Shown here: positions 50,054 through 50,571 of the stretch, in pieces | Numbering within the stretch: position 1 is the stretch's first letter | Layout of the letters: each line of letters starts with the position of its first letter | Source: Malacoraja senta | Taxonomy: Eukaryota | Direction of reading: 5' to 3' | DNA length: 64,000 nucleotides | Assembly: GCA_038087875.1 (NCBI GenBank) | Contig: CM075989.1 | Location: 7,750,001 to 7,814,000, forward strand | Made by a program: the position numbers and the translations under genes | Notes under the pieces: model-generated | Database searches by the model: none | Told to the model about the DNA's origin: nothing | The model's input: only the letters and a program-made list of their open reading frames with translations

Positions 50054-50137
50054 GACTTTTTCGATAGCTGCCATGACCCGTTTGATGTCATCCTTCGCCC
50101 GGCTCCTGGTCTCGGCCCACACCGATCTGCCAGACAT
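50054..50137 (-). pseudogene. BCL7A: Second, inverted BCL7A-like exon-1 fragment ([28 protein letters not shown])
   Basis: Within ORF 50012..50242; 27 of 28 residues match the recalled BCL7A N-terminus. Confidence 0.87.
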
Positions 50138-50448
50138 GCTGTGCATGTGTGTGTGTGTGTTTGTTTGGCGGAGTCTGAGGGGAGAAGCGCCAGTACCAAG
50201 GGCGAGCGAACGCGTGGACAGACGGACGAAAGCAACGATCATAGAGCAGCATAGGTGGACATTTTCGGGCCGAGACCCTTCTTCTTCTCTTGCTCCTCTT
50301 TCCCCCGACTCAGTCTGAAGAAGGGTCTCGACCCGAAAAGACCTTTGGTCACCTATTCCGCTCTATGATCGTTGTTTTCGTCCGTCTGCCGCGCGCTCTT
50401 GGTGCCGGCGCTTCTCCCCATAGACTCCGCCAAACACACATACACACC

Positions 50449-50571
50449 ATGTCTGGCAGATCGGAGCGGGCCGAGACTAGGAGCAGCAAAGATCGCTATA
50501 AGATCTTTGAGGAGCAGGGCGAAGGATGACATCAAACGGGTCATGGCAGCTATCGGAAAAGTATGGGATTG
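50449..50571 (+). pseudogene. BCL7A: Captured BCL7A-like coding exon 1 with its GTAAG donor, disrupted by a 31-bp insertion
   Basis: Reads MSGRSERAETRS[insert][19 protein letters not shown]; 92 nt without the insert; KRVMAA fits BCL7A better than BCL7B/C. Confidence 0.85.
50487..50509. mobile_element. 23-bp TIR-only remnant (footprint) of the same transposon family
   Basis: CAAAGATC+GCTATAAGATCTTTG flanked by 8-bp direct repeat AGGAGCAG (50479-50486, 50510-50517). Confidence 0.85.

Follow-up and report, generated by a model that had tools for sequence, protein, structure and literature searches.

Insertions of Penelope-like elements have been described as carrying an "inverted 5'-truncated copy adjacent at the 5'-end" (PMC8557442). 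Introns are retained in these elements, which are also able to mobilise host genes that contain introns (PMC8557442). In vitro, a Penelope enzyme cuts both strands of the target and extends them (PMC11167929), which provides a possible route to head-to-head copies. The pLTRs of Penelope-like elements contain a minimal hammerhead, with CUGANGA, a bulged base 5' of helix II and GAAA (PMC4209133). [quoted passage not shown] As regards inverted repeats that are transcribed, ADAR1 edits imperfect intronic duplexes such as inverted Alu pairs (PMC12695637, PMC7668262). The dicing of long dsRNA and RNAi are weak and constrained in vertebrate soma (PMC11239679). The siRNAs of hairpin pseudogenes are exceptions to this constraint (PMC3616710), and cases from mouse oocytes are discussed in PMC11239679.

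The locus described here lies in a window of 64,000 nt from Malacoraja senta, the whole stretch of DNA that was analysed. It contains a real fold-back, in which the start of BCL7A is present twice in inverted orientation, in arms of about 230 bp, and is joined to repeat ends of Penelope type. This fold-back is a further instance of processes already known: probable inverted insertion of Penelope type, capture of a host fragment, and P-type transposition and excision. It shares with Penelope-like insertions (PMC8557442, PMC11167929, PMC4209133) a repeat with the motif pattern of a minimal hammerhead, a partial tandem (the D1 repeat), a truncated inverted copy placed head to head with its tails outward, and intron sequence kept from a host gene. 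Unlike them, it has no RT/GIY-YIG ORF, its body is the 5' end of a host gene, it shows no flanking target duplication by eye and it is enclosed in a DNA transposon. As in Pack-TIR and Pack-MULE capture (PMC8277862, PMC5861414), a host 5'UTR and exon 1 are found between TIRs with a TSD, in a small element which is probably intronic in another gene. However, the carrier is of P type, not hAT, Tc1 or MULE, and the cargo is a retroelement-host chimera in palindrome form. ADAR1-edited intronic inverted repeats, for example Alu pairs (PMC12695637, PMC7668262), also form a duplex of about 200 bp with about 90% pairing within one transcript, as would probably be the case here, but our arms are derived from a gene and not from SINEs. 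As for hairpin-RNA and pseudogene endo-siRNA loci (PMC3616710; PMC11239679), an inverted duplication of a gene fragment could likewise yield siRNAs matching the parent gene, but here there is no sign of conserved pairing and the antisense arm is interrupted.

We have here a clear case, from a cartilaginous fish, in which transposons of two classes have acted on the same piece of host DNA: A chimera of Penelope style containing the start of a host gene is nested in a P-type element, together with a fixed P-type excision scar. The locus is evidence of recent P-type activity in a vertebrate and of the capture of a host exon. It is also relevant for annotation, as a source of false BCL7A exon-1 matches and as a palindrome in a probable GNB1 intron, and it offers a concrete elasmobranch locus for work on ADAR editing and dsRNA handling.

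Structure and content of the palindrome

The first-pass annotation had described two diverged inverted copies around a spacer of about 32 nt, and had proposed that they contain a Penelope-like head, a UTR and an exon of BCL7A. Both proposals are borne out. The left arm (50055-50284) and the right arm (50317-50562) are inverted copies of each other, separated by a spacer of 32 nt (50285-50316, plus strand). A repeat search of the window detects five collinear inverted segments around this spacer: 50055-50107 with 50510-50562 (96% identity), 50102-50155 with 50431-50484 (89%), 50151-50208 with 50390-50447 (86%), 50219-50257 with 50350-50388 (92%) and 50262-50284 with 50317-50339 (96%). When the two arms are aligned to each other, identity is 90.4% over 209 aligned nt. 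The 20 differences are 12 transitions and 8 transversions, and there are four indels (6, 9, 12 and 31 nt).

Each arm contains the same parts in the same order, from the centre outward: a repeat head, a UTR-like sequence and BCL7 exon 1. In the left arm they are read on the minus strand. The head (50248-50284) is truncated at GAAGAAGGG and matches a repeat of the window, CTGAAGAAGGGTCTCGACCCGAAA. It is followed by a stretch similar to a BCL7A 5'UTR (50138-50247), collinear in the arm alignment with 50360-50448, and by the coding part of BCL7A exon 1 (50055-50137, 28 codons). The right arm is read on the plus strand: The head (50317-50359) is an exact match to the repeat core, and the arm alignment places the UTR-like stretch at 50360-50448 and exon 1 at 50449-50571. 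The UTR-like stretch is about 90-110 nt long and ends in a (CA)n tract. The identity of the coding part is clear, as the left-arm exon matches Pfam BCL_N (E = 1.6e-10, 41 bits, cutoff 25) and 27 of its 28 residues are identical to PDB BCL7A chains, with 26/28 for BCL7B. The cargo is thus BCL7A-like, as the earlier annotation had it. In the right arm a scar breaks the reading frame.

The two copies end exon 1 in different ways. After the codon-28 region, the right arm continues with GTA TGG GAT TG|GTAAGG. Public ORFs which run through the BCL7 5'UTR end in ...IEKVRKW and a stop, a read-through of TG|GTAAG. These ORF ends place the end of exon 1 at TG|GTAAG, so the right copy includes the true exon end with its splice donor, followed by intron-like sequence of about 120 nt (50572-50689, plus strand), a reading of the sequence which applies to the right copy only. 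Since this copy reads through the exon-1 donor into intron-like sequence, the captured piece of BCL7A is unspliced. A processed (retro)pseudogene of BCL7A is therefore ruled out: Only exon 1 is present, unspliced, and TG|GTAAGG is kept along with intron-like sequence.

Several searches were carried out with the coding part. Apart from its top match, P0001, an unrelated repeat protein which was rejected, a protein search with the 40-aa ORF yielded exon-1 ORFs and BCL7 proteins from teleosts and tetrapods, with no skate BCL7A. No match covering the UTR part was found with a 76-aa ORF made of 5'UTR and exon. A homologue search with a full-length BCL7 match gave no cartilaginous member among the best 120 of 945 clusters, and ten BCL7 cluster representatives checked by name are all from bony vertebrates. 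An exact look-up of the exon-1 ORF in the public record returned no entry, and no match to a 26-mer of the conserved block came up in a metagenome scan.

The repeat head, GAAGAAGGGTCTCG(A/G)CCCGAAA...CACCTAT, is the start of the commonest short repeat in the window, with 10 copies at three or fewer mismatches and 0 expected. Both arms contain the motif CTGAAGA-A-GGGTCTCGACCC-GAAA, as do 8 other copies in the window. Its core reads as CUGAAGA, a bulged A, a GGGU/ACCC helix and then GAAA, which by motif pattern alone fits the published minimal hammerhead. Rfam gives no hammerhead or other credible family, either in a gathering search of the whole window or in E-value searches at the fold-back and at the best repeat copy. 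The Rfam matches to miRNAs are generic hairpin matches, far under their own cutoffs, and were rejected.

Eight further mini-Penelope copies of about 100 nt with the minimal-hammerhead core are found at 11248, 20843, 26377, 35598, 40037, 48541, 56382 and 56425. The last two form a tandem, 43 nt apart. A longer 3' extension (…TTCGATTTTCCAGCATCTGCAGTTCC…) is common to three of the mini-Penelope copies.

The palindrome is actually longer than its arms and spans approximately 49980-50790, with Penelope tails pointing outward and a 5'-truncated left copy. The outer inverted Penelope-like repeats already noted are present but weaker: The aligned part of the left tail, 50001-50055, is about 76% identical to 50724-50782. 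They are part of the same inverted pair, because the left copy simply misses about 160 nt (50563-50723) which are present in the right copy. After codon 28 the left copy rejoins the hammerhead stem (CGACCC...) and continues with the same kind of tail. This left tail (49980-50054, minus strand) joins the stem directly after the BCL7A codon and aligns to the mini-Penelope consensus of the window.

On the right side, a second mini-Penelope copy (50690-50790, plus strand) forms a downstream pLTR-like repeat with its tail. Repeat alignment detects it through the D1 direct repeat, 50294-50338 versus 50690-50734 (45 nt, 89%), which includes 19 nt upstream of the common repeat start. From D1 it follows that the spacer stretch belongs to the right-hand unit. 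In fact, the so-called spacer is a part of the right copy, which extends further at its 5' end: The left copy starts at GAAGAAGGG (50284), 32 nt later, and the difference is 50285-50316. As the sharing in D1 extends beyond the repeat, the unit consists of a repeat head, the BCL7A 5' end and a repeat with tail, a partial tandem of the pLTR kind. Two features of Penelope insertions are thus found here: an inverted 5'-truncated copy abutting the 5' end of the longer copy, and a partial tandem which gives pLTR-like direct repeats. No flanking target duplication was seen, by eye, at the palindrome borders (49979/49980 versus 50790/50791 or 50843/50844).

The carrier transposon

The palindrome lies inside a transposon of 1,169 bp (49780-50948). 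The element is flanked by a perfect 8-bp TSD, CTAGGGAG, found directly outside the TIRs at 49772-49779 on the left and at 50949-50956 on the right. The left TIR (49780-49813, plus strand) has 34 nt, CAAAGATCTTATAGCG...GGTCCACTCC, and is 97% complementary to 50915-50950; the right TIR (50915-50948, minus strand) pairs with it at 33 of 34 nt. The TIR core is found in only two places in the window, the two ends of this element. Between the TIRs and the palindrome, the left subterminal and internal backbone (49814-49979) is similar in inverted orientation, in patches such as that around 49866-49903, to 50845-50914, and the right backbone (50791-50914) shows the same kind of similarity to the left one. 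No ORF for RT plus GIY-YIG fits in an element of 1.17 kb, which would thus be non-autonomous in this respect.

A striking feature is a P-type excision scar found only in the right arm (50479-50517). It consists of a 23-nt remnant between 8-bp duplications, AGGAGCAG, and shows exact matches to TIR ends: The remnant (50487-50509) is made of 8 nt of one TIR end and 15 nt of the other (CAAAGATC + GCTATAAGATCTTTG). In the arm alignment it appears as a 31-nt insert which the right arm has and the left arm lacks. Both stubs have 17 nt or less, so they fit what is predicted for cleavage by P transposase (PMC7776569).

Three features of P-element-type transposons are found in this locus: an 8-bp TSD, TIRs of about 31 bp with subterminal inverted repeats, and an excision scar. 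The carrier is a non-autonomous P-element-type transposon, inserted here by cut-and-paste, as the intact 8-bp TSD shows. A sister element entered the right arm and then left it, leaving the scar, once both arms existed. Since the scar is in the right arm only, the P-type family was active after the palindrome was formed.

As to the relative age of palindrome and insertion, TIRs and TSD together have 1 mismatch in 42 nt, versus 4.0 expected from the divergence of the arms (P = 0.09). This comparison gives a weak hint that the arms may have diverged before this insertion, the palindrome having come as cargo of the transposon. A single copy is compatible with both orders: The transposon may have brought the palindrome, or the palindrome may have been retro-inserted in a resident transposon.

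The first bases of the BCL7A-derived part (50359-50374; on the minus strand, 50233-50248), CGCTCTATGATCGTTG, are similar to the TIR end CGCTATAAGATCTTTG, from which they differ at 3 positions. A P-type end which once adjoined the 5' flank of BCL7A could have left this likeness, but 0.64 such matches are expected per window.

Gene context and predicted duplex

The fold-back had been placed in the GNB1 pre-mRNA. The gene itself is confirmed by exon matches: GNB1 (Gbeta1) is on the minus strand (9760-26880), from an ATG exon at about 26.8 kb to a stop at about 9.76 kb. Coding exons are found at about 26.8, 24.6, 19.7, 16.0, 11.7 and 10.3 kb; the last one, with the stop, is at about 9.8 kb. One of the exons matches residues 167-233 of PDB GNB1 (E = 2e-47). 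The intronic position of the fold-back is probable and depends on what lies upstream of the ATG exon. This exon has a polypyrimidine tract and an AG about 45 nt upstream of the ATG, an acceptor which points to one or more non-coding GNB1 exons at higher coordinates. A CpG island at 62.0-63.5 kb (GC up to 0.72, observed/expected CpG 0.8-1.06), the sole promoter-like island upstream, is likely to be the GNB1 promoter with its non-coding first exon (62000-63500). The fold-back lies between the two, 23 kb from the ATG exon on its upstream side and at lower coordinates than the island, a position which probably corresponds to a 5'UTR intron of GNB1. The remaining CpG-rich blocks on the upstream side are the element itself, a repeat at 40.9-41.2 kb and a weaker block at 49.0-49.5 kb, presumably a repeat as well. 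We considered the 40.9-41.2 kb block as an alternative GNB1 promoter and rejected it, as it reads like a repeat with internal tandem units.

Folding of the region predicts a strong hairpin on both strands. The free energy of 50040-50580 is -385.5 kcal/mol, compared with -190 +/- 6.8 in dinucleotide shuffles (z = -28.8), and the GNB1-sense strand of 49960-50830 gives -503.5 kcal/mol (z = -26.7). The earlier suggestion that transcription would yield a long dsRNA is thus physically sound in either direction. In the GNB1-sense RNA the arms would form a duplex with 189 Watson-Crick pairs, 6 G:U pairs and 14 mismatches. Four bulges interrupt it, and the helices measure 39, 23, 17, 17, 15 bp and less; the 39-bp perfect helix is located in the coding part of the arms.

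We find no sign that selection has preserved this pairing. Transitions in the transcribed strand give 6 G:U and 6 A:C, with no bias towards pairs which are kept. A perfect run of 39 nt appears in 9% of random placements of 20 mismatches (P = 0.09). The identity of 90% between arms, the four indels and the even split of transitions give no indication that pairing has been preserved. Furthermore, the arm which is antisense to BCL7A in the GNB1-sense RNA is the right arm, the one interrupted by the 31-nt scar.

The first-pass annotation had also suggested that the dsRNA might act on BCL7A in trans, through endo-siRNAs or as an ADAR substrate. This part is unsupported: The arms are at 90% identity with four indels, their pairing shows no preservation and the antisense arm is scarred. 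If transcribed, the fold-back would plausibly be a passive ADAR substrate, as an imperfect duplex. Such editing would plausibly be generic and would alter the intron rather than BCL7A. As the arms agree at 90% of sites, the identity of each arm to the captured source is probably about 93-95%, which makes some 21-nt matches of the arms to native BCL7A mRNA likely. Nothing speaks in favour of siRNA action on BCL7A, and the regulatory reading is unsupported; a role as a BCL7A regulator would be of importance only if small RNAs were found.

Origin of the palindrome

We consider it probable that this locus is a decaying head-to-head BCL7A chimera made by a Penelope-type mechanism and nested in a P-type transposon, with no dedicated function and none towards BCL7A. 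The chimeric unit would contain a Penelope pLTR-like head, the unspliced BCL7A 5' end (5'UTR, exon 1, donor and about 120 nt of intron) and a pLTR-like repeat with its tail. Most likely, it would have arisen by a template switch onto BCL7A pre-mRNA, followed by reverse transcription of Penelope type, with priming on both strands of the target. We infer a Penelope-type origin because the pair has the shape of a Penelope insertion: a 5'-truncated inverted copy at the 5' end of the longer copy, with the tails outward. Today the head-to-head pair is enclosed in the 1,169-bp non-autonomous P-element-type transposon inserted here by cut-and-paste, and a sister P-type element later moved into the right arm and out again, leaving its scar. 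If transcribed, probably as part of the GNB1 pre-mRNA, the arms would form an imperfect duplex of about 195 bp, presumably a passive ADAR-type substrate degraded along with the intron. Some findings do not agree well with this explanation: By eye, the palindrome has no target duplication of its own inside the transposon, Rfam gives no hammerhead match, and the outer tails are only about 76% alike, versus 90% for the arms.

An origin at the DNA level should also be considered. In this case, Pack-TIR capture would have taken place: After an excision, gap repair or template switching in replication would have copied a promoter-proximal segment of BCL7A and neighbouring Penelope repeats, the copy would have folded back, and the product would have spread by cut-and-paste. 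The whole structure is inside TIRs with a perfect 8-bp TSD, intron-like sequence has been kept, and divergence is lower in TIRs and TSD than in the arms (the P value of 0.09 given above), all of which agree with this possibility. In addition, animal Pack-TIRs formed by gap filling or FoSTeST are known, including a multicopy 5'UTR capture (PMC8277862). Nevertheless, such an origin leaves the exact Penelope architecture unexplained, with its pLTR-like D1 repeat, outward tails and truncated inverted partner, and gives no account of the left copy rejoining the hammerhead stem right after codon 28. We therefore regard it as rather unlikely, although it deserves to be kept in mind. By comparison, very little weight can be given to a working hairpin-RNA gene, whose GNB1 intronic transcripts would be diced to endo-siRNAs silencing BCL7A in trans. 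A long duplex is indeed predicted for both strands, with a 39-bp perfect helix within the coding part, and there are precedents in mouse oocytes and in a human pseudogene hairpin (PMC3616710; background in PMC11239679). However, arms which are 90% identical with four indels do not suggest such a gene, and the arm antisense to BCL7A in the GNB1-sense RNA contains the 31-nt scar. Wobble pairs are not favoured, a run of 39 bp could arise by chance, and canonical RNAi by long dsRNA is constrained in vertebrate soma (PMC11239679), all of which make this gene most unlikely.

The palindrome might also be an assembly artefact, for example a fold-back chimera from long reads. Palindromes with a short spacer are a recognised class of artefacts of this kind. 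Artefactual fold-backs, however, are nearly identical, while these arms have 20 differences in 209 positions and four indels. One arm is scarred with an 8-bp duplication of its own, and one has a deletion of about 160 nt. With divergence and indels of this extent we have rejected an artefact, whose probability is practically nil.

Base composition is a feature of this locus which the preferred reading, a decaying Penelope-made chimera, does not explain. The observed/expected CpG ratio reaches 0.95 within the fold-back and 0.91 over the whole element (49780-50948), versus 0.42 in the window. Of 19 CpGs, 14 are intact in both arms, and divergence at non-CpG sites is 8.8%. Under a tenfold CpG hypermutability, such retention has a P between 0.005 and 1e-7. 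In older mini-Penelope copies nearby most CpGs have gone to TG/CA, unlike those in the arms, where decay at CpGs is hardly stronger than at other sites. The arm CpGs are thus better kept than neutral methylated DNA allows, so plain decay is not an explanation. Either the captured fragment of a CpG island is unmethylated in the germ line, or the differences between the arms do not come from decay in situ. A quite different reading, which we consider very improbable, is that of a palindrome carried by P-type elements into introns of expressed genes, either as an unmethylated shield against silencing or as a family of germ-line hairpins giving small RNAs directed at BCL7A. If this non-inert reading were true, the kept CpGs (ratio 0.95; 14/19) would be the footprint of that state.

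Two other repeats in the vicinity should be mentioned. Just left of the element, 49108-49217 contains a 30-nt direct repeat, CCCTGCAGCCAGGGTTCTGGAACTCCGGCC, with 83% identity and copies 80 nt apart; this stretch is moderately CpG-rich. The block at 40950-41220 contains imperfect tandem units (…cgacttcgggagctccaaccgcgggagc…) and looks like the core of another repeat family.
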